Source of the DNA: Paragordius varius
Lineage: Eukaryota > Animalia > Nematomorpha
NCBI GenBank assembly: GCA_964247055.1
Contig: OZ176059.1
Coordinates: 2,976,001-3,040,000 of the forward strand
Reading direction: 5' to 3'
DNA: 64,000 bases
Shown: positions 8,484-43,700 of the stretch, one piece after another
Layout: each line of letters starts with the position of its first letter
Numbering within the stretch: position 1 is the first letter of the stretch
Position numbers and translations under genes: made by a program
The notes under the pieces: generated by a model
What the model saw: only the letters and a program-made list of their open reading frames with translations
Database searches by the model: none
What the model was told of the DNA's origin: nothing

Positions 8484-9034
8484 ATGTCTCTGATACCCTT
8501 TTCACCTTTCGACGATATGAGTAGTGGGCGTTGGTTTCCATGGTCTGTGGCTCCTCCTGTTTTGTTTAATCAAAATTTTGGATCTGACCTGGCCGAAATG
8601 AATAATTTTATGCGATCAGCGATGAATCGAACATCTTCGGGTTTATCCGAAATGAATGTTGACAAGAATCATTTTGAAGTAAAATTGGATTGTCATCATT
8701 TTAAGCCGGAAGAAATGTCTGTAAAAGTCAAAGACAATATGTAAGAAATTTTAATTTTTGGCCGTTTTTTTGCTTATATTATATTCCTTTTCCTCTACAT
8801 AGGGTAACTATACATGCAAAACATGAGGAGAAACAAGATGAACACGGATACATATCGCGTGAATTTACCCGTTCTTATCTTTTACCGCCTGGGTGTGATA
8901 TAAATAAACTTAAAAGTCAGTTCACCAATAGTGGCATGCTTTCTATTGAGTGCCCACGCCAAGTCCCTGAAGAAAAGGGTGTTCGTAGCATACCCATCGA
9001 AAGGGGAAATACCAAATCTATTACCAACAACTAA
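8484..9034 (+). CDS. Small heat-shock protein, alpha-crystallin/HSP20 family, 162 aa
   Basis: Exons 8484-8740 and 8803-9034 with a 62-nt GT-AG intron. [66 protein letters not shown] is a typical metazoan alpha-crystallin domain plus IXI motif. Confidence 0.96.
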
Positions 9035-10953
9035 AAAAGTAGTCATTTATCCTATTGTCACTGCACAACACCACTTTACATTTTGATTTTTAATTGTTAA
9101 CCTTTTTATTAAAATGCTTTAGTTATTTCTTTTTGAATCACTAAACCATTAATAGTTATATTAGTTGATATTATATTTGGTTGACTAGTTTTAGAAAATT
9201 ATAGTCTTCATTATAGTATAGTTGTTTTATTAGTTATTAATAAATTTTAAATTTAGCATATTGCGTTTAATACATAATGCCTTTATATGCATGTTTTTTT
9301 GGAGCATAGCACACATTAATTAATGCCAATAGAAAATCAATATTGACGAAAATTAGTGTTTTTTGATTTTATATATAATTTGGCCAAAACTGATATCGTA
9401 CATTTTCATCCTGTTTTATATCAATTTATGTTTCTATTAAATTTTAAGGCATCCTTAAAATGAACACCTATATCATTTATAAAATTTCCCCCCCTATGTT
9501 AAATCCATATTGCATAAAATAATAGGAATTAATGATTTAGTTTCAGCCATATTCAAATCCCATTGTTAAATTTTAAAAACTGTGTCCCAGAATGATTGCA
9601 GTATATATAACGACTATTAACTGTGCAAAAACACCTATACTCCTTCAAAAAAATTATGGTAATTTTTTCAAAGCTAAAAATTGAAAAAATAGTCAATTCT
9701 GAGTTATATTCTGCATCATTGATTCTTATTATTAAATTTTTAAGGGCAGCAAATCATATTTATTTTTTCTCTGAAGTGCCGTGCACCACATAATACCGAT
9801 AAAAATTTCATAGATGTTTGACACATTTGTAGAATTTATACTTAAATTCATCAAAAATAATTAATTTAGGGCCATAAAAAAGCACTTTGAATCGAGATGT
9901 GATTGTAATTATGTGTGATATATTTTATTTTCCCGTTTAATTGCTACCATGCTTTAATCTCAAGATTGGGTTATTGACTACATTTATTTCAGTATAAAAT
10001 GTTTTCCGAAATCTATAATCAAAATTTATGAGTGATAACTTAAAGAATGTTATATTTATTTACAATAATTTGAATAACAAAAGGTTATGCTACAAGCTAA
10101 AATTATTTCATAATTTTTAAAATATCACCTCTTAAATACACCTTATTTAACATTTAGATAAACAGCTTATTTTATAATTATAACCCAAAAAATACTAATT
10201 TTTCTGAAATCAGTGCTTACTCAAAATAAAGAGTATTTTAAGTTATATATGAATAAAATTTTACAAAAAAGACTTATTCTGAGAAGCCAAAACGAGAAAA
10301 AACAAAATATAGTGAAATAGACTTATAGATACAAATTATCAAATAATTTTAATCAAGGTAGTGTATAACTCAGGGAAGTTTCATAATAATCGATACTTTT
10401 TAAAAAATAATTTTCTCTTTTTTAATTGATATTTTGAGGATTTCATCTTTTTTTTGAGAACAAGACCTCCGTTTTTTTCTTGTAACTACCATATATAAAA
10501 TCTCTAAGATACGACCCTAATTTGGCAAATCATAAATAAAGAGGACGTTAATTAATGTTCTTAATAAATCAAATTAACTGTGCCATAAATTTTAACCGGC
10601 CTTGGTAAATTATCAGCGATTTTAGATTTATAAATTGATTTCCCTATGTATTTAATAAAAATTTAAATTTATTAACCCCATTTATATTCACTGTATTAAC
10701 AAAACTAAAATGGTAGGTGACTAAAAAATAATTTATAATTGTTATCGATTCGTTTTCTCTAATGACCACTATAATTTTAATTAATTAAAACTTTTTTAAT
10801 CATAAATCTGTTATAATATTGACCCAATCATCATTAAAAGATATGTCATAAGATGAGGCTCCTGAAAATCAATTTAAAACAAATAAATATTAATTTATTT
10901 TAACAAATGGAAAAACAATAGATAATGACAACAATACATTGTATAGGAAATAT

Positions 10954-11124
10954 TTAAAATGTGTTAAATGCTTCCAAAGCCATTAACCGTGTATAGTTGA
11001 GCCATTCAAATGCCCATTTTTGATTCAAGGATAGTATTGAGCAATCTTGTAAGGTGACAGATTTTAACAATGGATTAAGGTCTAGGCACATGCGAAAACC
11101 ATGATGTTGTATCATATTGTGTTC
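10954..11124 (-). CDS. Alternative terminal GALNT exon 13b: second lectin gamma-subdomain
   Basis: ttttataacaag|GAA, phase 0, 171 nt to TAA. Encodes EHNMIQHHGFRMCLDLNPLLKSVTLQDCSILSLNQKWAFEWLNYTRLMALEAFNTF*, aligning to exon 13a [51 protein letters not shown] (minus strand) about 55 nt after the stop. Confidence 0.85.
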   Translation of the reverse strand, partial: EHNMIQHHGFRMCLDLNPLLKSVTLQDCSILSLNQKWAFEWLNYTRLMALEAFNTF

Positions 11125-13942
11125 CTTGTTATAAAATATTAGCTCATTGAGAGAATATATAATTTTATGGGATGCGCGTAAAAGTGTTATATACAGTATG
11201 CATTTTAATAGTTGCTTATATCACACTATAGTTGGTCAATTTGCTACACAGTATTGTATGAAAAAAAAAAACAAATTAATTAGCAAATTTTTCTTTTCTT
11301 ACATTACGTTGTTTATTTTATTCAATATTTAGTTGTTTTTTCCATATACTACTGTGACGCAAATTGCCAAACTATAGTGTGTAATAAGAGCAACCAAAAA
11401 ACAAGATTTGAATAAATGTTAAAAAATATTTGTCTTTTAGTTAATACGTCTTTTGTCTTTACAAATTTCGTTTACTACACAACCAAAAATTATAACCTAA
11501 AAAAATTATGTAAACAGAGTTTACAGCATATACACATGTGATTAGTAACAAAATTAATTACTATTTAGGAACTCAAATATACTAAATGTATGTAATTAAA
11601 ATTTGGTTATAATCGTTAAAGCGTGGTAGAGTGGTTAAGGCATGTAGCTTTTACAATATGCGAGTGGACTATGTTAAAGTTTAATTACCAAAATTGCAAA
11701 ATCTCATCCCTGGCTATACCAGCAAACGTTAAAAACTTAATGTTTCCTTATTTTAAATAAGATAGAGCTTTTATTTTTGATTAAAATAAGAATTTTGTAA
11801 ATTTGGCGATAATTTTATAAAGACTAAAACCACGGTTACTGATTTATTTTAAATGTTATTAAATTAAAAATTATCCATATTTTATATGCTCATTTTCTTA
11901 GCGTATCAAAAAAATATAGCATCAGGCATTTAAGGTAATTCCAAAATTAGATAAAAATTTATATATTACTTTCTGAAAATAAAATTATTATATATATATA
12001 TATATATATATATAATGAACCATCATGGTGTTTTTGGTTTAACTTAGGAGTATTTAAGAAACTTAGTTCCACTTTTTTTTTGTTAAAATGGCTAAAATAT
12101 ATTAAATTAATTTTATTTCGAAATTAATAGGGAGTTTATGTAAAATTTTTATCTCTATAAATGTGGGTATAAATTTCAGATTTTTGGATTCCTCAAAGCG
12201 GCTGTGTTCTCAAACTAAACGTAAAGATACTGACATTCTGGACAATTTATTATTGTGTACGACATCAAAAAATTATGTTAAAAGTTTACTTGATTAAAAT
12301 GTAATTTTAAAGATGATTTTGTCAAACCAATAAGCTGTTTTGGAGCATGAATGAAAAGGTATAAAACATTTTATATGATAACTTTTTCAAGTAATTCTAT
12401 GTTACTGCACATTTCTAACACTTCTAATTTCAACTTCGTACGTCTATACTATGTTTTTCAGACAAAAACTAATTAAATTTAATAACAAAATTAAATCTGA
12501 GATACTTGAAATGTTAAGCTATATTGAACTATAATGTAAAATGATCATGGTTTAAATTAATATATCAACATTTCGCTAAAATTATTAATTTACCCTAATA
12601 ATTAAATACTTATTTTTGGGCTAATTAACGCATTGATATGAATGTAAAATAGTTAATTTTATTTGGATTGTTATTATTTTAAACAAATTTTATTTTTTTA
12701 AAAATATAAAAATAGATAAATAATTATTTATTATAAAAAAATATTTTTTAGGGTATATTTGAAAAGTTTAAAGGAGAATTTGCAATTTTCTTCGGAATGT
12801 TCAAGAATCGATGTGTAAATAGAAAACTTATTGGATTTAATTGAAAAAACATAAAAATTTGCGAATGCGCCTATATAAAATAACAGTTTTTTATATACTA
12901 GAGTCATCTTGATATTTTCTTAATTTATAAAAATAAAACTCCTGTTTTTATTTAACTAACAACCAGCTTATGCACAAATCTAACCCTAATATTTTAGCAC
13001 TTTTTAATTGGAAAAATTTGATAAAATTAGGAATAACTACTTTAATAGAATTCAAACATTATTTCCACCATGATCATCCAATTAAACCAATTATTAATGA
13101 AATATTTTTTTGGTTTTTACATTTTTTCAGTTTTTTTAGATGAGTGCTTCCGGTTTTCAAAACAAACATGTATGTAGTAGATAAACTATTGTCATTTAAA
13201 ACGTAGAAATTATCATAACAAGTGTTTAACCCGTGATAGACACCAAAAATTTAGACGGGCCAGATTTAATGATTTTTGTCTTAAACGCCACATATAATAG
13301 ACAAGCATTTGATAGCCTCATATGCAGGCACTTATAAGCTTATTCAGTATACACCAGAATTTTTTGCGAATTATGCGCAATTATCATGATAATAACATCT
13401 ACCAAATTAACATATTTTATTATTAACCAATATTTGTAACGAATCTGGTTATCATAACATGTAAGTCTAACGTCGTGCCCCCAAATATTTAAACATATAG
13501 TATTTTAATATATACGCCTCGATAGATGTGTATTTGGGATATCTTGCCAGAACTCTCATATATATATATATATATATTACAGTTTAGAGTCTCTTTTTTC
13601 CTTTTTTATTAAAGGGCTCATAGATTTTCATTAAATATTTCTAATAGAATCATTGTGATCGATAAAAATCTTTACCAAGATGCGTATTATCAAAATTGAT
13701 GAATATAGTTCAGAGAGAGACGCAGAAAACATGTTAAATTCTATTTAATAATGTATTATCGATTCAAACGAAAATACGGAAAAACAAAAAATGTCGATAA
13801 AAATTTCAGAATGAATATTTATAAGTATTCAAAAAAATTTAATTCAGGGGCATTAAAAAAGCACTTTTTCGGCCGCATACGACCGTGAGCCGCGGTTTGA
13901 GTATTACTAGTTTAAATCTTCAATTTGGCGTCTTAAGATTAA

Positions 13943-14406
13943 CCCTATATTGATATTAAAAAACTATTAAAAAGGTCATCCAATATATGCCTTTATCAAA
14001 TAAAAAATATTATAAAAAATCCAAAATATATAATTGTGTGAAAAACTTTCCATATCAAACTAGTTGGACAATATTTTATTTTATTTAAGTTATCTTCATA
14101 ATAAATCTTTTCTAAAATTAATAACGACAGAAAAATGGTTAAATTCGCATTAATAAATTTAACTAATGCATTTATGTCGTATTATCAAAATTTTTAACCC
14201 TTAAAAGTTTATACATAAAATTAGTAATATCAAGCCATTTTGGACGTTTTTTTGCCTTTGGGTGTATCCATGTGATAAAAGTCCATATTTTGGAGATGAT
14301 TTCATTTTCCTAATTTATGAAATAAAATATTTTATATTAAAGAGGCCTAGGGTCGTCAACTACTCTCCAATTCGACTTAAAAGACATGTAGTAATTTATA
14401 TACGTG
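13943..14406. mobile_element. piggyBac-like MITE, diverged P1 relative
   Basis: TTAA|CCC..ACGTG|TTAA; internal sequence similar to P1 (aaaaaactat..tatgc..tatc..aataaaa..ccaaaata). Confidence 0.55.
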
Positions 14407-14676
14407 TTAATATTATACAATGAGTCCCACGGGGTCCCAAAACAAGTTTTTTTTATATGGCAAAAAATGGTACTTAAAAAACTAAATAATGGAAATCTTA
14501 TTACTAAAAAATATTCACCCTTTTCTGGAAATTTTCTAAAAATATATTATTTAAAATTTTTGGAAAATACCTTGCAAAAAATATGGGAAAATAATCTAAA
14601 ATATATGCAAAAAATTCATAAACGATTCCCTGCATGGATGATGCTAGGTACATACTTTCCAACCTAATTTTACTCT

Positions 14677-14958
14677 TACAGTAAATGATTAAAATTATAC
14701 AGACAAAACGTAAAAATATAAAGACAAATATTATAACCATACTTTTTAAAAACTTAATTTTTCCCATATAAATTGTTTGATTACGATTGTAAAATATGTA
14801 ATTGATTGTGTTACCGACATACATCTCTATTTCATATTTTATTAGGATAAACAATGATTTATATTAAAAAAATTAAGATTGAAAAAGTAGGGTTGTCTTT
14901 TAGAAAAAAAATTGTCTTTATATTTTTACTTGTCCGTATAATATCAATTTTTACTGTA
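14677..14958. mobile_element. C2 MITE
   Basis: TACAGTAAATGATTAAAATTATACAGACAAAACGTAAAAATATAAAGACAA..TTGTCCGTATAATATCAATTTTTACTGTA. Confidence 0.7.
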
Positions 14959-15925
14959 AATCAATGGCCTGCAATGATTGGTAACACCTACCTAATCAGT
15001 TATTCTATTACAAATTATCACACAGGCATTATAAAATACATTAAATCTATTTATATATCTATATTATATAATTATTTAAATCAAAAGTAATACAAAATCA
15101 TTTCCTAAAAATTTTGCATAAGTATATTATAAGTGTTTTACTGCTGTAATCAATCACATATGTCTTTTTTTTAAAATATTATAAGAGTAGTTAGGGCATA
15201 TGATAAAAATAAAAAGTAATCAATTTTTTAACCAAAATTATATATTTGTATGAAATTTTTTTACTCAATAAAATATATATTATATATAAAATAACCATAT
15301 GCATATGTCAAAATTCAACAATAAAATACAATAAAAGGTAGGAATATAATTTTAACAATATCAATGTGTTAAACGTTTGTTCCCTCGAAAGAAAAAAATG
15401 GTTAAATGTCATCACAACATATAAATATTTTGGAATTATCTCATAGCAAATAAAAGTTACCCAAAAAGCTAAAATTTTAATTCTGGCTTCCATAAACTAT
15501 GACACTATTTTATATATTTTTTTTGATATATTATATTACATTAGATAACCCTAGTTATTAATTTTGTGGTATTTGCACCAAATTTTATATAGATATAATA
15601 CCACATAAAATTGTATAAAAAATGGGATTTTGGAGTGATAAAAAAAGGAAATGATCAATAAAAGTTATAGATATATCTGTTCTTTTTGTGCAAGAAAAAT
15701 GAAATTATAATTGTGTATGTATGTATGTATATGCAGTTATCCTTTTTTAAGGGATATTGCAAATTTAATAATATAATATATTAGAGACATGCATTTCTTT
15801 AAGGTATAGAGCTATAAAAAAATTTCTTGGTTCCCCTCCTTGACCCTCCTTTAACAATATCTCCAAAAAAGCAACCACCAAGTTTGGTTCGGGGCTCGTT
15901 AAGTTAGAAAGAAGGCGTATAACTA

Positions 15926-17816
15926 TTAAGGTGGTAAATTGCTTATGATAGTTTGATTGTAGAAGGCAAATGACCATTGCTGTGTATTACTAGCCATGTT
16001 ACACGTATCAACGAAAACGAATCGTTTTTCCGGATCAAAATCTAGGCACATTTGTGTCGTGTGATGATATATACGGTTTTTGTCCTAACACATATATGGA
16101 TATGTAATGAAATATAAAAAACATACTACTTATTTATGATAGTATAGCAAAAATTGAATACACATGTTAGTATATATTGGTCTCCGTTGAAAGGAGTGTT
16201 TTTGACTCTTAATTTATTTTCACAGACCTGAGAAGCAGTTTGACCAGCAAATTGCTTTGTGCAAAAATTTTTAAAGTTCTATAATTCATTTGCTCATTAG
16301 ATACTTTTGTACTGATACATTTTCCTATTATATTTTTATAATTTGTTTCATTTATTATGCTATACTATATTATTTTCACTATACATTTGGCAATTTATAT
16401 TATATTGTTTGATTAATAATTGTTAAATTTTGGTTGTATTTTTATTATAATAATTTTGTAAACAAATCGTTTTCAAATGTCAGGAATCGAAAATGGAACC
16501 GGTTCCAAGTGTAAAGAACCGATTCCGGACCGCTAAATTTTTAAGAATCCAACGCGGTTCCGGCTCCATTGGTTCCACTTTTTTTAAACCGGTTACAAGC
16601 CCTGATATATATAAATCGCAAACAGAAACATTTGATAGCAATTAGTCCTCGAATGATAAATATATTATATATATATATATATCAGTCGACTAAATATATC
16701 TATCTATTTTCCTATTTAAACTTCTAATAACACATCCCGCTTTAGTGATCAAGACCGCCCCTAATAGGTATTCATTACACCATGGAAAGAGAGAGACTAT
16801 AAAACAAAAATTCATAAAATAAAACGCATTATTACACTTACAGCCAGCCAACATAATGATGGAAAAAATGTGTAAAACATACCGGCATATATCGCCACCA
16901 TTGATTCCCTTTCATACCGTGACACGGGTACATGGATACTCGTGTTTTGGGGGCAGAATAGGGCACATCTAAACACTTTTCTTTGCCATCAACCTTAATA
17001 TCACGTTTCCATCGCCATATAAACACCTTTAGGTGGGGACGGGGTATATAGATAGGAATATTGTATCATTAAAATATATATTTTTGAAATTAGGGAGCTA
17101 ATACAGGGGTGAACAACACAAATGGCTTCACGCGTTGCATTTTTTGACAATATCAAAAATAAAATTAGATTTAAACATGGAAAAAAATATATAATTACCA
17201 ACTATTTCATTAATTTTTGTTAGTTTGTTGGAAACAGGAAAGAATTACACAGAAAATTTATTTAGGAAATAGCAATTTTCCTAAGATATTGAAACATATT
17301 TTTCAAAATAAGGAAATTAATTTATTTAGTTTTCCAAAATTTTCGCGCCCAAAATATCTCGAGTGCCGCATGCGACCCGTAAACCGCGTATTGAACACCC
17401 CTGATCTGAATAATAATTTGTTAAAACTTAATATTAAGATTTTACCCATAAAATCATACCATTTTTACATATAAAGGCAAAACTTTTAAACGAAAAAATG
17501 TTGCGTTTTTAAACGCAACTTACTATATTATACTTATTAAATATTATATGTAAATTTTGCACCTTTAAAATCAAACAGTTTTTTTGCCAAAAAATATATT
17601 ATATTGGGCCATGCAGTGTATAGCGCAAAAAAAGATATGAAAAAGCTAAATTAAAGCAGATAATGTGACATGCAAAATAGTCACAAGAAGAAAAGTATAA
17701 TGGCATGCATATATAGTATAGTGTTGGATATTTCGTGTTTTTAATATATATAGTAGGGTTAACCTATGTATGAATAAATAATATATGTAAATAATATAAA
17801 GTGATCATATAAGAAG

Positions 17817-17847
<31 letters not shown>

Positions 17848-20800
17848 GTATAACTATACCATAAGGTTAAACATTTACCATGTTATGTTAACCTAATCAC
17901 ATTATGTATGCTGCAAACTCCCACCTGCATATTACGTAATATTATAGCTTTCAAAGCTATTTTGTTCATTAACTTTAACCCTAACCCTAAATGTCAACAA
18001 GTGTAGTGTACGTTATATAAGTTAACGCGCAATTTTTATTCGACCCATTATAATTAAAAACGATTAAACTTTATCCTTTTCTCTCATATATTACAATAAA
18101 TTCTAATTTTTGGTGAATTTCAGGAAAAATTAGCGCAATTTCCCACAATTTTTTGTTTTTGAGTTAAGGTTTTTTTGTTTAGAATTTTTACCGGTAAAAA
18201 ATTCCAACATTGATTCCCCAAACTACCATGGCAATTGCGTATCGCTACGCTGGGGAACGTAGATTCACTGGCATCTAAACATTTATGGCTACCACCCATA
18301 AAGATTTCCCTCTTAAAGCTCCAAATGAAAAACTGTGTAGTAAATGTGTGTCAATTTTTACGCATTAATATATACATACATAGAAAAATAATTACAGTAG
18401 TGTATAGAATATACAAATATGTGTCCATAAAAGAATAAAAAAATGTTTTTTTTTTAAAAAAAACAATAAGCCTAGTTGTAAATACACATATCTATAATAT
18501 CTCCTTGTTTTTTTTTAAAAAAAAACATTTTTTTATTCTTTTATGGACTAATCTTGTTTTACTCCATACGCTACTGTAATTCATATGGCTATGAAATATA
18601 CGAAAATGTGTTTAGTCACCACATAAAACAAATGTTAGTAATTTGACAAATGAACGGGGTGAGAGTTAAAAACCTTGAATCATCAATTACACCGGGTAAC
18701 AACATGCATATACAATTAAAAAAGATAAAATTTAACAATATGTATATATATATATTCTTTAATTAACGAGAAATATAACCAATTAGTTACTTTACAAATT
18801 GTTAGGATTAAAGCGGATAAGAAAGTTTTATAGATACATGCACCATCATTAAGAATATGCATTGCTAGCTATTAAATATAGCCAGATAGCATATAAAGCA
18901 TTATTCTTATTGGCTGTCAGGAAAAAGAGAAATAACTATAGGTAATAATATATCTTTCCTTACTTCATATATACCATTTGCAATTCAATTTCACCCTTTA
19001 ACAATTCGCACTCACCCTCAAAATAAATTATGTGTTTTCGAACTAATATTCATCATTTAAAGGAAATAAATTCTTATGGCATAGTTTATTACTTTTTCAG
19101 TATTATATTAATTTTAATTTCATTTTGAAAAAATATAGGTAATTTTCAATCATAAAAAATCCATAATTTAATTTAGGGTAAATTATTGTTTAAGGGGTGA
19201 ATTTAAATTGTTTAAGGGTGAATGAATTGTAAATGGTTTATTAATGAAAAACTAGCAATGTATACTTACTCATACTGTAACACACGCAAAAAAAGTTTTA
19301 AGGGCCCAAATATAATATGTTTTAATTATTCAATATAAATTATGGCACAAAAAAACCGTTCGATTTTGATGGTGACCACTACTAAAACTAAAAAAAGGTA
19401 ATAAATAACAAATAATTAGCCTGCTATATATATATAATAATAATTTAATTTGTTATAAATAGTTTAGTACTATATGCATATATAATCCATACCTGATCCC
19501 CTTCAAGGGAGGGATCATCCTTAACACATTTATTCACAATCAAATTTTCTTTGGAATCGACCTCCAAACATAAGTCATTGTGGATAGATCGGACCTATAA
19601 TTGATATGTTAATTATTATTACTGAAATTTATTGTAAAGTTATTGAGAGTTTGAAATTATTAAAATTTTTTAAAACTATTTCGAAGCAATAGAAACGGCA
19701 CCTTTTTATAGTATTTTGAAGGCAGTAGAGGGGTTAAAAAATTGATCATTTGGAAATATTTTTCTTTTTTTCCCACAAATTTTAACCCATTATTATTAAT
19801 GTCTTATTTAAAAATAAATTTTGTTACTGTTCATTAAAAAGTTTATACTTTTTTGGTTACTTACTTACATGTAGCAAAATAACTGGGCTCTCTCTCTGTA
19901 AGTGAAATTGAACCGAACTTATTCACAAACTGTTATTAAAAGTAACACCAATTTACCCCTTTTATATTGATGCATATTAACTAAGAATAATAATGAACAC
20001 AATTAAATTTTATTACAACTACATCCTTATTTAGATATTCACGAATATAAAATACAGAGAAAAGTTAAATATAAATGCAAATAATTTTGTATAGCGGTAA
20101 CACAAGGAAAAAACAAATGTTATAGGATGTAGTTATAATCGCTTCTACAATATAGAAAAATAAAATTTCAGCACAATTAGAACCGAAACTCTTTTAGTTT
20201 AAGGTGGTCTATGTTGCCCAATATTCCATTTCATATTTTATAAAAACAGTTTTTTACAACCCCCCCCCCCCCAAAAAAAAAATAGCTAAAAAATTATCAA
20301 CACATAGACACAAAATGTTATTGCATGTGTCATTTTGTGAAAGTCATAATAATAATAATAATATTAATATACTTTACAATTTTAATTAATGCCATATTGG
20401 TATTAAATATGGGATACAATACACAATCATATTATTGCAAAAAAGCTAATGGGTTTTTACACTTTTGGTTTTTTTCTTAATTTCTGGTCTGGTAAAGTTT
20501 AACAAAAACCCAATCATGCCAATGAAATCAATTAACCATAATTAGCAAATAAACGATTTGCTATAAATTAACCGATATAATGATACAATTATAATTTTAA
20601 TTCGAAAACTACTCTCCCCGTTAATTCATATTAACAAACGTTTATTCAACAATAAAAATCATTTTTCTCAAATAAAGGACCAAAATACATCTCTATTGGT
20701 ATAATCATAAGGTTTAATTATGGAATGCCAATTAATTTACCATATATATCAGTAAAGAGGTATTAACCAAAAAAACATTTTATTTTACAACGATGATACA

Positions 20801-23746
20801 ATACATTAATACGTTTTCGCCAAAAACTACTATTTAATTACGTAGTAGCGAACCTTTAACCTATCAATAAACCCATTTTTATTAGGATTTGTTTTTCGTT
20901 TACTTTTGTTTTAGCACACTCGGGGGGGGGGGGTTCAATAATGGAATATACAATACCCAATCATTTTGGCAATCGATATAGCATTTATAGTAAGAAAAAG
21001 ATTCACTCATATATTAATTTACCGATATAATGTTATCAGATACAAGGTTTTAGTCGAAAAAAAAACTGTAATTACTTCAACAACCATTATCTATTAACCA
21101 AGGCATTTCGTTTCATTTAGATTTTTAAATAATGAAAAAGGGTAAAAATGAGGGATAAAATACCTCTCCGTTAGCATAATCGGGAGGTTCAATCATGGGA
21201 TATTTGAGGGGAAGATCGAATGAAATGTTATGCATGAACCAAGAAAAGTTTTTACAATGCAAGCGTTCACGCAATGCCTTTTGTTCCGTTAAATCTCCTG
21301 GGTCTAAGTCACGATATTGGGGTCTAATATATATATATATATATATATGCATATATAAAAGAGTAGAAATTTATTAATATATATGTACCATTTACAGTTC
21401 AAATTCACCCTCAAACAATTAAACACCCTTGAACAATTTAAATTCACCGTAAAAATAAATTATGCGTTTTCGAACTAATATAAGTCATTATTAATATGAA
21501 ACACTATCTTTATGGCATTACTTTATTATTTTTTAGTATTATTTTAATTTAACAAAATTTTATTTTTAGGTAAATTTTAATTTTAAAAATCATAATTTGT
21601 TTGAGGGTAATTTGAGTTGTTCAAGGGTAAATTCAGATTGTTTAAGGTGAATTTAATTGGTTTTATGTCAAATTTTTGATATCTAAGTATTTATAAAGTC
21701 ATAAAAAATTATAAATTAGAATAATAAAAATATTAACCAATATTATAGATAAAGGTTTTTTGGTATATATATAAAATTTTATGTCATGTTTTTAACTTAT
21801 CGTTTAGGGTTGTGCAATTAAAGAATTAGAATTTAGTAGTTAAGTCAAATAGATAATATAAAAAAAATAGTTTTATCATATTAATTGAAAAAATTTAATC
21901 AAAAAGATAAAAATAATTTATAAAAAAAACAAAATAAATTATGTTAGTTGTATATTTTTAAAAGAATATTACCTTCGCATATAAATGTATTCCTTATATT
22001 CATCCATCCAAACTTCTGCAACTCGTTTATAATTCTATAATATAATAATAAGTATATAATAGAACAAAGATTTATTATATACCGTTTAGAATTCAAATTT
22101 ACCTTTAAACAATTTAAATTCACCCTTGAACAATTCAAATTCCCCCTAGAATAATTCATAATCACCCTAAAATAAATTATATGTTATTTAAGATAATTTC
22201 CTAAATTTTTATATATTCTTAAAAAATAAAATTTTGTTTTGAATTGAATAATACTGAAAAACTAATAGACTATGCCATAAAGATATATTTTATATTAATA
22301 ATGAGTTATATTAGTTCGAAACATTATATATTTTTAGGTGAATTTGAAATGTAAATGGTTATATTAATTATTTTCCCAAAAACATCAATTGAGTAATATA
22401 GAAAAAAATGGTTTTACTTATCTAATGCTAATCAAATATATACATACTATCTAGTAGGAATGACAAATTAAAATATAAAATAAAATTTTTAGGTAGTTAT
22501 ATTAATTTATTATTTAATGATACACAACCAATATGAATGATTTTCAAGAATAAAAAATGTATGTACACACTATATGTAAGAATTTGTCTACACAAAAGGT
22601 GGTTTACTGTATTGTTTTAGTTAGTTAAAACATAAATTATAATGTTAAACCTATAAAATTGTCTCTATATATATAAAGTTTAGTCTTTTTTCATTTTTTA
22701 TCAAAGGGTAAGGACTTAAATTAATTGTATTCAGACTTGTGAAGGCGTTAAAACAATCGCCTGTTTGCCCAGGGCTAATTGACAGTGATGATAGAAAAAT
22801 CGCATAGATTCGGGGTTCAAACTCTGGCACGTAGTTTACTATAAGAGAATAAAACTTTAAAATATAGCATTTACACCTCAAATTTACTCTTGACGACTAC
22901 GCAAATCCCCCCTTAAACATTTCAAAATCACCGTATAAAATAAATTTCGTGTTTTTTGGAAATTCAAAAACACGCCTATATTTATGTAGTTTATAATCAG
23001 TATTAATTAAACAAATATGTTATGATAAACTATGCCATAAAGATTTGAGTAAAATTAGCACCCCAATACACATGTTTAATTTTTTAGTCCAAAATGAATT
23101 TGAAATGTTCAAGGGTCGTGTATTTAAGTTGCAAATGGTATTAGTTTAGTTATATTACAATGGTAATTAACGGATTGGTTATGTTTTGTAATAATAGTTG
23201 TTAAAATCCGTAATATAACGATAAAAAATAATTAAATAGAATTAAATGAAATTATAAATAGAAATTATAAACGATATGTGAAACCCTTTGTCAATAGTAA
23301 TCGCAGACTAGTTTCGTGCTTGTTAGCACTCATCAGTACGACAAACTATTTGACTACTTGGGATTTAACATATCGATTTCGTAAAGATATATATATATAT
23401 ATATAATTTCTATTTATTATTTCATTTAATTCTATTTAATTATCCTTTATCGTTCGTTATATTACGAATTTTAACAACTGTTATTAGTTATATTACCTTG
23501 CCAACAAAATCACCAATTTGTGGGTTAGGAAAAGGGGCATACTTTCTATAAATATGACCGACACGGGAACATGGTGCATCTACCATTGAGCCCCCACATT
23601 GCCAAATCTAACATTTATCATTCATTGTAACATGAAAAAAAAGTCATAAAAATATTATATATATCTATACAGTAGCGTATGGAATTAAACAATATTAGTC
23701 CATAAAAAATAAGTTTATTTTAAAAAAACAGTGGGATATTATGGAC

Positions 23747-23803
<57 letters not shown>

Positions 23804-26800
23804 GGGTTGTTTTTGAAAAAAAAAACATTCTTTTATTATTTTATGGACTAATATTGTTTTATGCCAAACGCTACTGCATACATGTATATATGAAAAAAAA
23901 CATCTTTACGGTTAATTTTATAAAAAAATAATGTAATAAGTACAAACAATGATATCAGTCAGTATATGGTATTGGATTATTTATAAAATTTAATTTAAGG
24001 TTATATATTTTTTTAAGCGTTCATTATTTGCCTTCAACTCATGTCAAAATCCAAAAAAATGAATGAAAAAAAATTATATTCTTTTATAATTTCCAATTTA
24101 TAATGAAATTAACTTAAAATAATGTAAATAAATTCAATTTTTAGAATAAAGTTTTGACATTAGAGTAATGAATCAGTCAAAAAGGCTCAAGTAATTACGA
24201 TTAAAAAGTATATCACATGTATTGTGCAAATATTTAGTTTAGTTTACATATTATTGTTCACTAAACGAATCATCAAATGATGATATAATAATAAAAAAAA
24301 CCTTAAAAGATAATTCATATTGTTCCCCGCCCCAAATCATGAGACCAGTGTCATAACCGCCCAGTTCCCAAAAGTAATTTCGATCCATGGCAAATAACCC
24401 ACCAGCCATAACGGGACTCCTATATAGTAAATGAATTTTTTGTTTCATTTGGTGTGCAAAATGGGAATAATTAAAGGTGTTTGGCAAAAAATACATTCAA
24501 TCAATCTATCTATTATATAATTAATTGAATTAAATTATAGAGAAAGTATGGTTGTCTTTTTAAAAAGATATTTGTCTTTTACAGTAACCCCCTAAATAAT
24601 AATAAACTTAACATATAAGTAATATAAATTAGATAGCATATGTTAATCATCGTGAATTTTTTTAGATTATTTAATAAAGCCATACTTTTTGATTCAAATT
24701 GCTGAAAGTCGTAGTTGAGAAAATTTTCCTTATAATAAACCTCAGATAATAATTGAAAAATTATATTTAACCATTTTTTTATCGATTAAGCTTTTTTAAA
24801 TATCTGTAGCATTATATTAAATTTTTAATAAATTTTATATATATATTTTAAAAGGTCATATATTTTTAATAGGGGAAATTTTATAAAAAGAGCGAATAAT
24901 TCTGTCAATTAAATAAGATTGATCCTATTATAGATAATTTTTTGTGAGCATTTTCCCATTCCCATTATTATTAATGTTTATAATTTGCCAAAACATATAT
25001 AAACGACAATTGATAACATAAATCTATACAATATCAATATGATTTTTTTGTAAAACATATGTATGTTAAAAAAAATTTTTATTAATTAATTTCACAGTCA
25101 TGGTCGTAGAAATGCATTGATAACTAATCGAATTCAAAATCCACAAGACAATAGTAAGTGCAGGTAAAAATAAAATTATAAAAACAAAAGGTTAAATATT
25201 TTTTCTTGAAAAAAAACAGAAACCATACTTTGCTACATTATTAACCCATAGGATCGTTTTGGGTAGCGACATCGGAAAGCGCTGTAAATTCTCATTTAAT
25301 ATTATACATTTTTCTTTTAAGCAATTAGGTCAGGGGTGTCCAACATGAAAAGCTTGACGCGCCGCATTTTTAACTCAAAAAAATTTGACGTCCGACATTG
25401 GAAATATACAGTAAAAGTTTGTATTATACGGACAAAACGTAAAAGTAAGATGTTAATATGTAACACAATCAATTATGTAATTAACGATTGTAATTAAATA
25501 ATTTATATAGGAAAAATAAGAATTAAAAAAGTATGGTCGTCGTTTAGAAAAAAAATATTTGTCTTTATATTTTTACGTTTTGTCCGTATAAATTCAATTT
25601 TTACTGTATTTATGAGCATTTGACCTTTTAGATTTCAAGCTTAAGACTGTAAAATTCAAAAACAATATGTAACAATTTTTTATAGTTTTTGTCAATTGTA
25701 TAGACTCATTCAAAAAAAATGGTTAAGAAATATTAAATATGTTAACATTTTGTGACATATATTAATAATTTATGGATTTCCAAATTTTTGCAAACGGCAT
25801 ATAAAGCCTCAGGGCGTGTTAGATACCCCTGGTAATATTATTTAAATCCAAATTTCCAAAGGAAAAAATTGAAAAGTAAAAGGAAAATATATTTAGACAA
25901 TCACACTAAAAACTTGGATTTTTTCTCTACAAACTTTATGATTACAATTCGTAAGAAGAGCGGGGTGATTACCAACTTTCATATTCATGTGTCTTAGCAA
26001 CCCGCCTGAAAAAAATCATTGCTGTTTTTATACAATCAAAAAATATGTTTCTCATAAATTTTTACGGTACCTTAAATTTTTTCCCGTACATACTTTTCTG
26101 TATAGTTTTGGGGTTCGATCAGTTGGTTGTTGATGCATTTTTATAACCGTGATTGCGATCACTTCCAAAAATAATTAATGTTAAACTGTTTGGATAAATG
26201 TTTTTACCATGGGATAAAACGTGAAAAATGGTGTAATTAACGTATAAAGTTTCATTGTCGTTCGCACTTATTTAGGTGGCCAACATAATGAAAAAAAAAA
26301 CAAACGGGAAAAATTTTTTTTGCGATGGCCAGGCTGTCTTCTCTTGATATATAATACAAAAAAGTTTGCTTATCAAATTTTAACTTTAGTAAATTATTTT
26401 TTCCCCGTCCACCCTTAAAAAAATTAAAAGGCCCTTTTTTAAAATTAGACCCCCAGTTCGAGCTTATTCCTTGTAAAAAACAGATTTTTAAGAAAAATTG
26501 AAAACAGAAAACTCAAACTTGAAAGGATCAGCAGGGTGTGCCAAGTCCTCAGGGAGTAGGGGAAGGCGTTTATAATAAAGTTCCCAATCAAAGGCTCCAC
26601 GGGCCCCCTCATCCTGTGCTCGGTATTCAAAATTCTCATAATCTATAACGTCTATGAAGGGACACACCACTGTCCGATAATTTTCGGCAATCGGTTCTAA
26701 ACAACAATGTAACATTGCAATATAAATAAAATATGTAGGTATGAAATATAAAATTTTTAAATGTTTTATCTTTTTTTTTATAAGAAAATTGTTTTGATCT

Positions 26801-28648
26801 AGTTAATTAAATTGTTGTAATGTCATAAATGTAAGAAACTGAATGTAATTATAAAATATATATATAGTGCTCATTTTATTATTAGCCACTTCACATTATT
26901 TTTGGCCACTTGGAGACAATACAGTAATGTGTGAGCAAAAAAACAGCAAATGGATGAAATTAAACAATTTTTTCGTATGTTACAACATTGAATTTGTAAA
27001 TTTAATTATGGTCAAAATTTGTCCTATATCATAAGCTACTATAATACCAATTGGCCAACAATAAATATAATCATGAGCTTTATTAAGCAAAAATAAAGCT
27101 TTTAAACTAAATACATGCAGATCGTTCAGGTTTCCTATTTCAAATTACATTATGAGTAAGTATACATTGCAAGGTTTTCATTCTTATTGCCAGATGGAAA
27201 ATAGCAAAAGAGAAATATAATTGGTCTATAGTTATTTTTTCGCTTTTCACTACAGTCAGTAAAGTAAATAATAATTCATACCGCATATGCTATTTGGCAA
27301 TATTTAATGAAAACAAAAAAACTAGAAATGTATACTTAGTCATGTTTGTAAAATCGTTAAAAAACAAGGGTTATTTTCATACAACCCAAATAGGGCCACT
27401 AATATATAATTATATATAACCATTTATAGAACCGATTATATAGATATAACCCAATAAGGTATTTATATATGGGATTACACAAAGTTTAAAGCTAATTATC
27501 ATGAGGGAAAACGTAAATAAACATTTAGAACTAAATCCAAATATCTTGTAAAATATAATTTGAGGAAATGATAGATTATAGTTTGGAGCGAGCAAAGAAA
27601 AATTAAATAATGATATGTCAATTTAGTTAAATTACATGTATGACAAAAAAAGACTTAAAAAAATTAAACACCCACCAAATTTATGGAAAAAAAAGTAATT
27701 ACTCATTTATTTATTTAACCCCATACTACAAATCCTAATAACATACATATAATTTTATTTGATTATACTTTTTAAACCCCAATTTTATTAATTTACATCG
27801 TTTTTGCAAAATAAGAAATAGACATGTTAATTAAAAACACTGTATTATATTGTTCACAATTATATATACGATATATGTAGAATATAATATTTAAAGCTCT
27901 ATTATACCGTAAAAATATTTGACTTTATATAAATGTTTTACGTTAAAGCATTTCTACAGTATTATATTATTATAAAATTCATTATATTCATAACAAAGTT
28001 AGGATATGTGTGAAAAAAAATTATCCAGGAGGCTTAAAAAGTATGGAGCTGTCTTAGAACAAAAAAATGATTATTTTCACGTTTTGTTTTTATACTTTTA
28101 TTGCTGTAACTAATAAATAAATAAGTAAATAGAGATACCCAACAGAGGTGGTAACCAATTAACGTTACATTCGATATGGCTATCAAGGAATATAAGGACC
28201 TGACCTGTGGCGACTTTAGCGCCCGCTAACCGTGCCCGGATAAGACCTTGACGTGAAGGCATTCGAATAACGCGGGCCTGAAAACGTGCTGGAATTTTTT
28301 CCGCTAAATACCGTTCTAGCGGTTCCTTAAGGAAATCTGTATGAGTGTGTAAGTGTGTATGTGTTAAAAAATAGTTATATGATGTACTAAAGTGGTTAAT
28401 TAATAAATATTGTGATAAAATGGTTTTGTATAAGAGTTTTATTATCATGGTGGTTAGAAAGTTTTTAAATTTTATAAATTTAACAGGCACAAAAAAATTT
28501 ACATTTGGATGATATTAAATTTTATTGTAGTATACAGATTTAAACATTATATCAAAAACAAACCTGATCCATGCATTAAAAATTAACACTGAATTCTCAA
28601 AGAAAACCATTTAACCATTTTTTAAAAAGTTTGCAAAAAAGATTAGCC

Positions 28649-28689
<41 letters not shown>

Positions 28690-31600
28690 TCCATCTACGC
28701 CTCAAATTCACCCCCTCAAACAATTTAAATTCGTTCTCCTTAGATTTATATGTATAACTCATTATCAATATGAAATATCTCACTTTATGGCATAATTTAT
28801 ATTATTTTTTCCAAATATTCATATTTAACAGGTAACAATTTAATAATGCAAAAATTTATTTTAGGGGTAATTTTGATTTGTTCAAGGGTGAATGTTTAAT
28901 GGTATATAACAATATAAGCAATAACTAACCTTTAGTACTAAAATCATCCACAAGTATAATTTCATGTATAAGCTCATGAGGTGACCTATTTATAACACTA
29001 TGGACGGAACGTAAGAGTGTGGTCCAATGTTCCTGATGGAATGGAATGACAATACTAACATTGGGTAAATTTGGCAGATATTTTTTGGTTTTACATCTAT
29101 TGTGCCGATAATGCAGTAAAAATTGAAATAAAATAATACGGTGAAATATATAGACAAAAATTTTTTTTCAAAAGATACCCAAACTAGACCAGTAAAAATT
29201 GAAATTATACCGTGTCAAAACGTAAATATATAAAGACAATTTTTTTTTTAAATTAAATCTGTTGTTTTTAAAATATATACGTCATTATTTAATATGCAAA
29301 GTATGAAACAAAAATGTATATTAACACCAGCAATTAGGTATTTCATAATTGTTAGAAAATAAAGAAAACTTAAGGTTTATGAAAGTATGGTGCCTTTTTT
29401 TAAAAAATATATGTCTTTACATTTTTACGTTTTATCCGTAAATTCAATTTGTTTGTATGTATATATATATATTGTGTAAAATCAAAGAAATATTAGTGCC
29501 CTTAAACTGGGATATATAAGGGTACTTATTAACATTTCATTTTGTTTTTTATGCTCTAAATTGTATTACAGTATGAGTAACTATACATTGCTAGAAAATT
29601 ATTAATTTATGTTAAAAATCGCATATAAAATAAAGGGCAGTAATATGAGCGTATAGTTATTTTTTACTTTTTTCTAATATTAACCAATATTCTCTTTGTT
29701 GTATATGCCATTTGGCAATAATTATAACTTTCTAGCCAGCCAATATATACTTATTCATACTGTAGATTGCAAATCGGTAAAAACACCACAGTTTCTTTAT
29801 GGGAAAACTAAACTATGTTCTTCTTTGAACGTCAAGAGAATGTTTAAGCCTATAATTAGGACTGTACGCTATTGATGTGGATACTTATGTTAAGTTATAT
29901 AGTTATTCAAATAGATTGAATGAATTATTAAATAACGTGTATTAATTAAAATATTTTTATGAATGAAAAATGCGATTTATTATGGAAGATAAAAAAATTT
30001 TATAGTTTATTAATAATTCTGAAATAAATTTCCAATTTCCACATAATTAAGAAGCAAAAACATTTCCATAAAATTCATCTACTAGTTTCAATAAGGTCTA
30101 AATTGGATTCGTTACCCATAAAAGTAGTTGATAGATATTATATATACCATTTGTTCATATTCACCCTTAGATAATTCAAATTCACACTTAATCAAACTCA
30201 CCCTCGAACAATTCAAATTCACCCGAAAATAAATTGTGTTTTTTAAAATTAAAAATTACCTTTATTTTATAATATTTTTAAAATATGAAATTCGGTTTAT
30301 TAATATAATGCTGAAAAAATAATAAAATATGCCGCAAATATATATTTCATATTAATTATGGGTTATATTATCCTGAAAACACATAATTTATTTTTAGGGT
30401 GAATTTTTGTTAAAGGATGAATTTAAATTGTTTAAGATTGAGTTTGAATTGTAAATGGTATATAAAACTTTACTGGACTAAACTTCAACAAAAGCAAACA
30501 TAACTTTACAAATTAATATAATATGTAAAAGTGTTAAGATACAGTGGAAATATAAAATCAAATTATATTATATTTTTATATATCCAAAAAATAATATTAA
30601 TATTATCTTTGTTCGCAAAATCATTTTTTTTTTGAATTTTATGGCAACTAACAATTATAATTATATTTTTACATGTTCCAAACATCTTACCATTTTTTAT
30701 TAGCCTATATCCAAAATTGGGGATAAATATTAATATTTTGTTTCAATGAATTAATTACATTTTATTTTAAGTTTCTTATTATATCTTAGACATTATGTAA
30801 CGGCTAGCTTGCAAATATATGTTCACAAAGTATTGGTAAAAATTGATATTTTTAAACAAATCGCCACAGAATTTTTTAAGCGTTGAAAATGCGTGGCCCG
30901 GGAGACCATTTAAGTTGGACATCCCCTGTTTGAATATTGATACACACAACTGAAAAACCATGTATCAAAAATTTTGGATATACTTTTTCACCAAAATTTC
31001 ATGTGCGGTTCGCGAAAAATTATCTAAAAGTTGCAAAATATGCTTACAAAATCTTGGTAAAATTTACAAATTTTTTGAATAAACCTACTTATTCAATTGG
31101 CAGGAACTAGATAAAATTTAGTTTGTATTTGCATTATAAAGTCTCGCATGCTTAAATTTATTAATTTATTTATAACTGCATTTATATATATTAAGAATGC
31201 GGCCCGCAGAGCCATTTATAGATCCCTTGGCTTAGCAAACATTTGTGCAAATAAGCAAAACACTGTTTTTTGCACACAAAAAACAGTCCCATTCGAATCT
31301 GAATTTGAATTAAAAGAATTTTTTTATAAGATTGCAACAAAAACTAAGATTGATAAAAAACGCTTACAATGGATGCCTAATGTCAGGTAATGAACGATCC
31401 AAAGCAATCCCATCCGAAGCCAAGGCATTAAACCCATTAACGCTAAAGAGTTGTTCTCGTTTCTTTTTGGTTTGCGCGTCTTGGGCTACGTTATAGGCTT
31501 TGCCTTGTTCCCCTAAACCTAATTATTTATACATGTTATAAAAAAAATATATTTACACCAAACCAACTTGAAAAATATTAAATATTAAATTTAAACGTTA

Positions 31601-40730: not shown

Positions 40731-43700
40731 TTAATCAGGTTTACTACATATCTCTGGTCCGGTACGTGAGTATTTATATTTAGTGTTATGTTTTGAAGTT
40801 CCAATAAAATTATCCTGGTTACAGTCATCATGAGTGACATATTTTTTATATGTGGTCTCTTTCAACACACCAAATTTTTTGCATTTATATCTTCGATTTT
40901 GAAACCTAATAAAATTATATTATATATTTATTATTCATCAGCCATTTAAATCACCGGGTACCCAACACAAATGATTTGGATCAAAAAAAAATCCCGTGGG
41001 TCGCAAAATATATAGGCATAAATAAATTTTTTTATTAAATTATTGTAAACAAAAGATTGTAAAAACTACCATTAATTTTAACATTCTAGTGTTTACTGCC
41101 GAATTCGGAAAGTATTATTGAAAAAATATATTAAAAAAAATAATTTTATTTGGATTTCGTAAAATTGTGCATTTAAGAAATTTCTTGCAGGCTTCAGAAT
41201 AATTTTGGAGGACCGCGTGTTGGCTACCCCCGATATAGATGAATATATGAAATTATACCAAATTTTGACTTGAGTATTTGTAAGTTTAATGCTTTTGGCC
41301 AATTTGTCCCTTTCATACGAGGTTAAATACGTCTTGGTAGCAAATATTTTTTCAAGTTCTCGTATTTGAGCCTGGGTAAATAGGATACGTTGTCTGCGTT
41401 TAACTGAACTACCTACGACATAATCAGTGCTATTATCATTTTCATGTTTTTGTCTATTTATGTCATTTTTATCCATATCATTATTTTTTATATTTTGATT
41501 GTTAATGCATAAATTGTCCACTCTCTCCTTATTATCAATATCTACTACATTATTAGGAATTGTTTGATTATGAATGCTACAAAAGTTATATGGCATATTA
41601 TGTGTTGGATTAGTTAATGTTGTATGTCGCGAATTTGTCAATTTCGTCCCATTTGCACAATGATAGGGTACAAGCGTTGTAGTAGACCCATAACAAAACT
41701 GTTTTTCTCGTTTTGTGTCACCGTGTTTTTGGAGAGTTTGACACAGTGCAATTAACGTTGAATTTTTCAACCCTAAACATGTTTTATTATTGGCATTTTG
41801 TTTACCCGATAATTTTTTCTGGGTAACCGCGTCAATTGGTTCATCATGAATGTGGCCTATATCGGATTTTGTTGAATCAGAAATAAAGTTTTCGTCGACA
41901 TTGGGACTGTCACCAGTAATATTGGGATTCGTTGGATTGTTTTGAGTATAAGATGGTAAAAATATATGTTGAACAGTATTTTGATTGCGTAAATTTTTTG
42001 ATTCTCCTATCCCTGAGTCAAAATTAATCAAAAATTTTTTGTTTTGATTGATATATGATTTATCATCTTGTGGTGAGGCTTGTTTATTCAGTATGTTTTT
42101 GGTCAGATTTTCATAGCATGATAAGCCAGTCCCATTTCTCTATAAAATGGCATACTTATACATATATTGAATATTGATTATATTTAGTTAGAGGACAAAC
42201 ATATGAATTCGGTTTATTTTTGGCCATAAATTTGGACCAATTATTAACATATAAACATTTAACTATCACAATTAAATATATTTTAAATTTAATTAAATAC
42301 AAACTTTTAACTGTGTCGCAATGAATTTAAATATTAAAATTTGTAAATTTTAAAGGCATAGTTGATAAATTAGACAATTCCATCAAATACAATATCAGTT
42401 CAATGGATCTTTTTAATTTTTCAATTTGAAAATTAGGTTAGTGTACCATAATTAATATTAATCCAGTTGAAATATTTTCCCAAAATTTCCAATAAACAGC
42501 CACCTTTTACTGAATTGTAATGCGCCCTTTGATATAATGCATTACAGCGTATTCCCCAAAACAATTGATATAAATAATTTTTATATGAAAAACCTATGTA
42601 TTTTTTTACCAGGGTGTCTTGCACAAATGGCTTCGAGGGCAGCATATTTTTACTCAGAAAAAACGCCGGGCCGCATTCCCAAAAATATATGGGCATCGAC
42701 AAATATTTCAATTGATTTTTTTTAATATATATAACTGTAAAAAAATTGCGATCACAATATAACTACTATTTATTTTAACAATTTCTACTTTATTGCCAAA
42801 ATTTGGGGAGAGACGTACGTAGTCATAAAATTTGTTTAAATATTAACTAATTTTGCAAATAGTAATTTTTAATTATAAAATTAGGAATTTGATATTTTTA
42901 AAATTTCCTCAGGCGGTATTTTCGGAAAGGTATGCGGTTCGCGTATCTTACACTCCCTGATTTAAATAATAACCATTGGTGTTTTTAGAGCTTAACACCA
43001 ATGTATCGAAAAAACAGCGCACATTTTTTAGTTATTTGAAGACAGCGTTCATATATATATTATATGTTAACACGTTGACGGACAATTGCGGCTATAGCCG
43101 TCAAAGCGAAGTTCACAATGTGGCATGACTGCTATAGCCGTCCAAAACGAAACGGTCGTTTTTAGACACTACGGCTATAGCAGCACAAATGTGCACTTAC
43201 TGGCGTATACGTAGAAGCATAGTGTCGTGTTTTGAAAACATCTTTTTAGGTTGAAGTTCATATTTCACCTGTTATACGAGTTGCAGATTCAGTATGCACG
43301 TGGTTGTGAAGGGAGTAGTGCGATCGTGTTTTCTATTGAATTTATAGTTCTTATTGATACCCTTAACGATTAATTAAAGGTATAATCAAAATTAAGTTTA
43401 TTTAAGCAGAAAGAGTAAAACTATACTTCTAACATTCTAAAAATCACAAAAACATATAGTGTCGATTTTCGAACTTCGCTTGTTCCTACTGTCCGTCAAC
43501 GTGTTAAGAGTTAAAAAAAAGTGTTATACCTGCATTACCGTTGTAAGATAGTATAAATAATATTTTTGATAGGCATTCTGCCACGCATTCAGATAGTATG
43601 TATAATAAAGTAATTTTAATTTGAACGATGTCCCTTGCTCGGTATCCGCGGTTTTGTGGATAGATGATATATTTTTATGATTATTATCTTTATTTAAATC

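Follow-up and report, generated by a model that had tools for sequence, protein, structure and literature searches.

Tandem-duplicated beta- and gamma-repeat exons in a T10-type GalNAc-transferase gene of Paragordius varius, predicted to be used as swappable lectin parts

Duplicated lectin exons in a GalNAc-transferase gene

We analysed a 64,000-nucleotide (nt) stretch of the genome of the nematomorph Paragordius varius (assembly GCA_964247055.1, contig OZ176059.1, positions 2,976,001 to 3,040,000), referred to hereafter over its full length as the window. The window sits in a 110.6-Mb animal genome with a guanine-plus-cytosine (GC) content of roughly 25%, and its minus strand carries a single polypeptide N-acetylgalactosaminyltransferase (GalNAc-transferase, GalNAc-T) gene of the T10 type, extending from 35698 to 10954. 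Two exons of the C-terminal lectin domain of this gene, the beta-repeat exon and the last exon, which encodes the gamma repeat, are each present in two homologous copies. The exons of the lectin domain are the following:

19493-19594, minus strand: alpha, 34 amino acids (aa), single copy, without the Asp/His/Asn sugar motif
18192-18332, minus strand: beta-a, 141 nt, 47 aa, diverged beta repeat that keeps Asp/His/Asn
16883-17026, minus strand: beta-b, 144 nt, 48 aa, canonical T10-like beta repeat with Asp/His/Asn and Tyr
15926-16084, minus strand: gamma-a, 52 aa and a TAA stop, proximal last exon
10954-11124, minus strand: gamma-b, 56 aa and a TAA stop, distal last exon, 4.8 kb past gamma-a

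A preliminary description of this stretch had placed five phase-0 lectin exons at these positions, and closer analysis agrees with it: all five exons are open, their lengths are multiples of three and they are bordered by AG/GT, both gamma exons carry a TAA stop, and all junctions from exon 9 onward are in phase 0. The Pfam Ricin_B_lectin domain matches each beta and gamma exon separately (E 7e-8 to 9e-3), and the CLD...C...QxW pattern is present in every one of them. A tblastn search of every exon against the window returned duplicates for beta (E 7e-11) and gamma (E 7e-9) only. The same search found no second alpha exon in the window and no second catalytic exon, so that the single catalytic exon set of the preliminary description also stands. 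The two beta exons share 45% protein identity and the two gamma exons 35%. The order divergent, canonical, canonical, divergent that had been proposed for the four exons holds when they are compared with about 190 T10-type proteins, where the best identity is 38% for beta-a, 53% for beta-b, 51% for gamma-a and 42% for gamma-b. The two beta exons are adjacent, homologous, similar in length (141 and 144 nt) and in the same phase 0, which is the layout of a mutually exclusive exon cluster.

Both gamma exons have an acceptor and a stop. An AATAAA hexamer lies about 55 nt past the gamma-b stop (10894-10899, minus strand), and was dropped as evidence for polyadenylation, since the hexamer occurs at chance level in the AT-rich DNA of the window (354 matches, 398 expected by chance). 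Two unrelated inverted-repeat elements are found near the extra exons, one at 11215-11388 and one at 18390-18581, with arms of 62 and 77 nt, located 91 nt 5' of the gamma-b acceptor and 58 nt 5' of the beta-a acceptor. The very high word depth of the first element in reads of the species indicates that it is probably a MITE-like (miniature inverted-repeat transposable element) repeat.

Gene model and family assignment

The upstream part of the gene, from exon 1 (35698-35161) to exon 9 (21323-21164), was assembled exon by exon from splice sites and phase, and comprises the following exons:

35161-35698, minus strand: exon 1, start codon, signal-anchor helix and stem, 179 codons plus 1 nt
31368-31518, minus strand: exon 2, end of the stem and start of the catalytic domain, AG/GT, consistent phase
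28930-29096, minus strand: exon 3, start of the GT-A fold, AG/GT, Pfam Glycos_transf_2 (E 2.6e-8)
28139-28336, minus strand: exon 4, DSH metal-binding motif, Pfam Glycos_transf_2 (E 1e-12)
26519-26696, minus strand: exon 5, catalytic, AG/GT, 80% identity to the T10-type transcript L021
24302-24419, minus strand: exon 6, Gal/GalNAc-T motif, Pfam Glyco_transf_7C (E 3e-6)
23497-23607, minus strand: exon 7, catalytic-loop exon (IWQCGG...VGK), single copy in the window
21973-22034, minus strand: exon 8, catalytic exon of the gene model
21164-21323, minus strand: exon 9, end of the catalytic domain and linker

Across these nine stem and catalytic exons and alpha, every border is AG/GT and the phases chain without a stop, giving 595 codons to the end of alpha. 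Exon 1 is an open reading frame whose donor consists of a final G followed by GTAAA, with a phase that matches exon 2, and exon 2 has 58% identity to L021, an orthologous transcript. Direct reading of LDSH in exon 4 confirms a GT-A catalytic domain with a DxH metal motif. Together with the Gal/GalNAc-T motif and a C-terminal ricin-type (QxW)3 lectin domain, this gives the gene the features that define family GT27.

Assignment to the GALNT10 family, as originally suggested, is borne out by best matches in the PDB and by the names of the relatives of L021. Exon 4 best matches human GalNAc-T10 (2d7i, E 5.6e-15), exon 9 matches GalNAc-T10 at E 1.3e-13, as against 1.5e-6 for T7, and the best match of both gamma exons is the GalNAc-T10 gamma repeat (gamma-a, E 4.9e-6; gamma-b, E 0.002). 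The public relatives of L021 go by the name GalNAc-T10 or, where they come from insects, "N-acetylgalactosaminyltransferase 6"; identity to these relatives reaches 91% in the catalytic exons, which among the proteins sampled are closest to T10-type proteins of arthropods. A strict preference for glycopeptides, exerted by a GalNAc pocket in the catalytic domain, is a further hallmark of the T10/T7 subfamily. No annotated protein of the gene itself was present among the 120 proteins listed in the L021 search.

Origin of the duplicated exons

In a search of the 110-Mb genome, each extra exon had its closest match in its neighbour within the gene, beta-a in beta-b and gamma-b in gamma-a. The genome has five other GalNAc-T paralogues, none of them closer to beta-a or gamma-b than the neighbouring exon, and no duplicated lectin exon was seen in these paralogues at the sensitivity used. 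We also scanned metagenome contigs, which yielded 80 loci with a related beta exon, among them five T10-type genomic loci long enough to judge: three invertebrate (L007, L010 and L015) and two vertebrate-like (L014 and L017). At all five the beta exon and the gamma exon are single, and a search with each locus's own exons did not turn up a diverged second copy either; in this respect the two vertebrate-like loci differ from the Paragordius gene. The exon borders themselves are old, those of L014 matching the gene described here down to a beta exon of 144 nt.

The 45% identity of beta-a to beta-b compares with 28-38% between beta-a and any orthologue. For the gamma pair, the corresponding values are 35% against 20-31% for aligned metagenome orthologues, although this comparison is weaker, as local best matches in the wider protein panel are higher (51% for gamma-a and 42% for gamma-b). 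The simplest reading of these identities is that two tandem exon duplications took place inside this lineage and that the outer copies, beta-a and gamma-b, would since have evolved faster.

The extra exons as maintained coding sequence

The GC content of beta-a (41%) and gamma-b (36%) falls among that of the other exons (31-45%), and their flanks have 18-28%. Identity by codon position is 0.64/0.68/0.34 in the beta pair (Fisher p 6e-4) and 0.48/0.58/0.35 in the gamma pair (Fisher p 0.04), with third positions at random level in both. Since this pattern could also arise if one copy had drifted, a neutral-decay simulation was run, in which a canonical copy drifts under intron base composition until positions 1 and 2 reach the observed identity. 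About 3% of the simulated runs remained free of stops and some 1e-4 kept the C-L-D...C(-H-G)...(G-N-)Q-x-W residues. Simulated decay lowered GC to 0.35 and 0.29 and, at a modest indel rate, 5-9 frameshifts were expected, as against 0 observed. The two extra exons appear to have been maintained as coding sequence, and a long-dead relic is rejected because the stop-free frames, the kept motif residues and the lack of any frameshift contradict simulated neutral decay.

Reads were aligned to 10950-16949 only, a region that covers gamma-b, gamma-a and the end of beta-b. One sample (X3) is from the same species and about 1% different, and another (X5, "organism B") has identical sequence at low depth. 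In the second sample of the species gamma-b is intact, with 1 difference in 268 nt compared with about 1% in introns.

Predicted splicing and alternative explanations

The interpretation that we favour, with a probability of about 0.62, is that the tandem-duplicated beta and gamma exons are used by alternative splicing as swappable lectin parts. Tandem duplication within the lineage would have doubled the beta-repeat exon and, separately, the last exon with its gamma repeat, and all copies would have been kept coding. One of the two beta exons would be chosen, as a mutually exclusive pair, and the message would end either in gamma-a or, by skipping gamma-a, in gamma-b, the two serving as alternative last exons. 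The same catalytic domain would in this way be mounted on two to four beta-trefoil lectin domains, in proteins of 694-699 aa. Splicing itself, the exclusivity of the beta exons and the independence of the two choices are all predictions from exon structure. If the variant with coupled choices considered below is counted in, it is very probable that the extra exons function as alternative exons.

Several results weigh against this interpretation. Both beta exons have lengths divisible by three and they lie 1165 nt apart, so that neither nonsense-mediated decay through a broken frame nor steric hindrance by a short intron enforces exclusivity, and regulation would be needed. The gamma-b acceptor is weak (ataacaag before the first G of the exon), and beta-a holds an odd third cysteine, which is unpaired. 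A HMMER search of 1.84 billion representatives for a gamma-b orthologue found none, returning three generic ricin-repeat proteins only. The three small sequencing runs guessed to be RNA matched almost none of the stretch's words, and two of these runs (X6 and X8), aligned to 10950-16949, yielded no piece of the gene. The two DNA samples, being of the same species and having 0-1 difference across gamma-b, are too close for a selection test. An open frame alone is also a weak indication: as many as 43 of 1319 stop-free stretches in the 9-kb region reach at least 47 aa, and the open reading frame by itself was rejected as evidence because such long stretches are common there.

Well-covered contigs in two of the "RNA?" runs match 36 nt of beta-b (16895-16930) at 89%, with GC-rich flanks unlike the genome; these contigs may come from another gene or organism in those runs.

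The weak acceptor and the unpaired cysteine also fit a rather unlikely alternative, in which one or both extra exons were recently silenced or are used at trace level, as remnants of an alternative exon system that once functioned, and protein is made from beta-b and gamma-a only. The existing annotation, as seen in the preliminary description, ends at gamma-a, the acceptors of the extra exons are preceded at 58 and 91 nt by the inverted-repeat elements, and no orthologues of these exons were found. Intact frames, AG/GT borders, motif residues and exon-like GC nevertheless reject an old relic and leave room for a very recent loss only, and the second sample, with its intact gamma-b, argues against silencing as well.

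It is also unlikely, though the nested order of divergent and canonical exons fits it, that the two choices are coupled, beta-a always occurring with gamma-b and beta-b with gamma-a, to give two co-adapted lectin domains in place of four. The beta and gamma repeats pack together in the beta-trefoil, which speaks for such coupling, and pairing between two self-complementary (TA)n tracts (17817-17845 and 11989-12014) could exclude beta-b and gamma-a jointly by looping them out. However, (TA)n tracts are present throughout the introns of the window, so that pairings of this kind are expected by chance, and no covarying residues were found between beta-a and gamma-b. Two clusters within one gene are regulated independently in C. 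elegans unc-32 (PMC4165533). RNA pairing as a mechanism of exon choice was itself set aside: the candidates amount to (TA)n tracts and the two inverted-repeat elements, which have no evidential value without related genomes.

Inclusion of both beta exons in a four-repeat lectin domain would keep the frame, both being in phase 0 with lengths divisible by three, but is highly improbable: a beta-trefoil of the ricin type requires three repeats, all of the about 190 T10-type proteins sampled show just one beta start motif each (W-x-x-D/E-I/L/M/V-R/K), and L021 and other transcripts carry one beta. One Mytilus gene model repeats just the end of the beta exon.

A further candidate exon lies between exon 9 and alpha:

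19869-19895, minus strand: candidate cassette micro-exon, 27 nt, encoding RESPVILLH in the interdomain linker, recognised by sequence pattern only

Its acceptor is rich in pyrimidines and its donor reads GTAAGT, and it is the sole strict candidate in 11 kb of the introns of the gene. A direct junction of exon 9 with alpha, however, aligns well with human T10 and with L021, which has no insert at this point. We put the chance that 19895-19869 is a real micro-exon, which would lengthen the linker, at about one in four.

A stronger form of alternative splicing of the beta and gamma exons, in which both choices are free and controlled by tissue or stage, perhaps with the micro-exon added, would give four to eight lectin and linker versions, with beta-a, which has Arg for the pocket Tyr and five fewer positive charges, reading a glycan or peptide context other than GalNAc-Thr. 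We regard this form as doubtful. If true, this enzyme family would have its first case of a sugar-binding repeat that is itself swapped in nature, as well as its first two-site modular lectin system.

The sugar-binding pocket and the predicted effect of the beta swap

Lectin repeats of GalNAc-Ts bind GalNAc through an Asp/His/Asn motif, which in T10 is located in the beta repeat (PMC10901373). Direct reading of the Paragordius exons finds the motif in the beta repeat only, where it is complete in both copies. Alpha lacks it, having CLE and neither CH nor GNQ, and both gamma exons lack the His. As the complete motif is confined to the beta exons, the repeat that the gene duplicates there is exactly the one that holds the sugar pocket of the lectin.

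As previously noted for this gene, the beta exons differ at the stacking position: the residue three before the His is Tyr in beta-b and Arg in beta-a. Both nevertheless retain Asp/His/Asn. Tyr is found at the stacking position in the human T10 beta repeat and in aligned sugar-binding repeats. The net charge is +6 in beta-b and +1 in beta-a. Gamma-a and gamma-b have equal net charge and differ mainly in their tails. Because the beta exons differ so strongly around the pocket, in charge and in Tyr versus Arg, exchanging them would be expected to alter the lectin's recruitment of already-glycosylated substrates, in the manner of the alpha swap of PGANT9.

In mucins and other proteins, the lectin domains of GalNAc-Ts select the already-glycosylated regions that gain further sugars, and the diversification of specificity is an open topic in O-glycosylation. 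If the extra exons are used, the gene would constitute a natural experiment in which beta and, separately, gamma are exchanged on a constant T10-type catalytic domain, and would provide ready-made chimeras for testing the contribution of each sub-repeat. The gene model of this genome should take in both extra exons.

Comparison with known alternative exons in GalNAc-transferase genes

The precedent named in the preliminary description, the swapping by splicing of a lectin alpha repeat in Drosophila pgant9, is accurate (PMC6115407): the alternative alpha exons 8A and 8B of pgant9 (CG30463) change substrate choice (Ji et al., 2018). The Paragordius gene resembles pgant9 in having one catalytic domain, two homologous exons for one lectin sub-repeat and a strong difference in charge between them. 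It differs in that pgant9 is T1-like and swaps alpha, acting via a loop near the active site, whereas here the gene is T10-type, the predicted swap involves beta, the repeat with the sugar motif, and there is a second gamma last exon. Splicing and function are demonstrated for pgant9 and are predicted for the present gene. In T1/pgant9-like metagenome contigs, two alpha-like pieces precede one beta (L019, 784-879 and 2514-2552; also L023, L018 and L020), which is consistent with the pgant9 alpha exon pair in another organism.

Mutually exclusive exon clusters have been shown experimentally in C. elegans gly-5 (exons 9a/9b/9c) and gly-6 (exons 8a/8b) (Kuroyanagi et al., 2014; PMC4165533). Like the Paragordius gene, these GalNAc-T genes have tandem homologous exons with lengths divisible by three. 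Their exons are shorter, however, at 102-111 nt, and some of the introns between them, at 11-34 nt, forbid double inclusion, in contrast to the 141- and 144-nt beta exons here, which lie 1165 nt apart. The mutually exclusive exons of gly-5 and gly-6 were reportedly described by Hagen and Nehrke in 1998.

Within the T10-type genes, the comparison of isoforms covered public proteins matching L021, with 20 clusters opened and about 25 isoform sets. Four bivalve genes (Dreissena, Mercenaria, Mya and Ruditapes) have equal-length isoforms X1 and X2 that differ only in the alpha exon (P0022/P0187, P0190/P0036, P0191/P0195 and P0026/P0199), a pgant9-like alpha swap in another subfamily, where the Paragordius gene has beta and gamma duplicated. 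The nemertean Tubulanus polymorphus has, according to NCBI annotation, isoforms X1 and X2 of a T10-type gene with different gamma last exons (XP_074650052.1 and XP_074650053.1), and its genome contains tandem gamma exons (L095, 46676-46834 and 48823-48984), each with a stop, 2 kb apart and 53% identical. Two tandem, stop-bearing gamma last exons constitute the same architecture as gamma-a and gamma-b; the Tubulanus case differs in being an independent duplication in another phylum, in a gene with a single beta and a second catalytic-loop exon, and in resting on database annotation only. The catalytic-loop exon (IWQCGG...VGK, corresponding to exon 7 here) has two to five alternative copies, in equal-length isoforms, in a priapulid and two nemerteans (Priapulus, P0103/P0125/P0126; Lineus, P0069/P0183-P0186; Tubulanus, L095:42801-42911 and L095:43653-43745). 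Human GalNAc-T10 (PDB 2D7I), the best structural match of the catalytic exons and of both gamma exons of the Paragordius gene, likewise has the sugar motif in beta only. Isoforms of Penaeus were rejected as a swap case, the difference being of only 7 aa and in the stem, as were Mytilus models of 804 and 634 aa, which are repeat or model artefacts.

Neither an alternative beta nor alternatives for both beta and gamma in one gene were seen in the about 25 T10-type isoform sets. The preliminary statement that such an arrangement is unknown for the T10 family is consequently upheld for the beta swap and for the combination of beta and gamma in one gene, and does not hold for alternative alpha exons (bivalves), gamma exons (Tubulanus) or catalytic-loop exons (Priapulus and Lineus). 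No description of alternative T10-type isoforms of the alpha, gamma or catalytic-loop kind was found in the literature. Alternative homologous lectin exons in GalNAc-T genes are already established, and what has not been seen elsewhere is the beta swap and its pairing with gamma. The independent duplication of single exons (alpha, gamma or catalytic loop) in T10-type genes of several phyla points to a recurrent route of diversification.

Other features of the window

Beyond the GalNAc-T gene, the window contains further coding sequences and several repeats:

8484-9031, plus strand: small heat-shock protein gene (Pfam HSP20, two adjacent open frames), convergent with the 3' end of the GalNAc-T gene
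41096-42139, minus strand: open frame of 348 codons, with a homeodomain (Pfam E 2e-13) and an extended N-terminal region of low complexity
52937-54500, minus strand: several exons of a collagen gene with Gly-X-Y repeats (Pfam Collagen, E 2e-16)
1218-1568, 21307-21459, 21947-22183 and 30115-30255, minus strand: repeated element, in introns and intergenic DNA
14550-15149, 12550-12749, 13550-13749 and 16150-16749: further high-copy repeats

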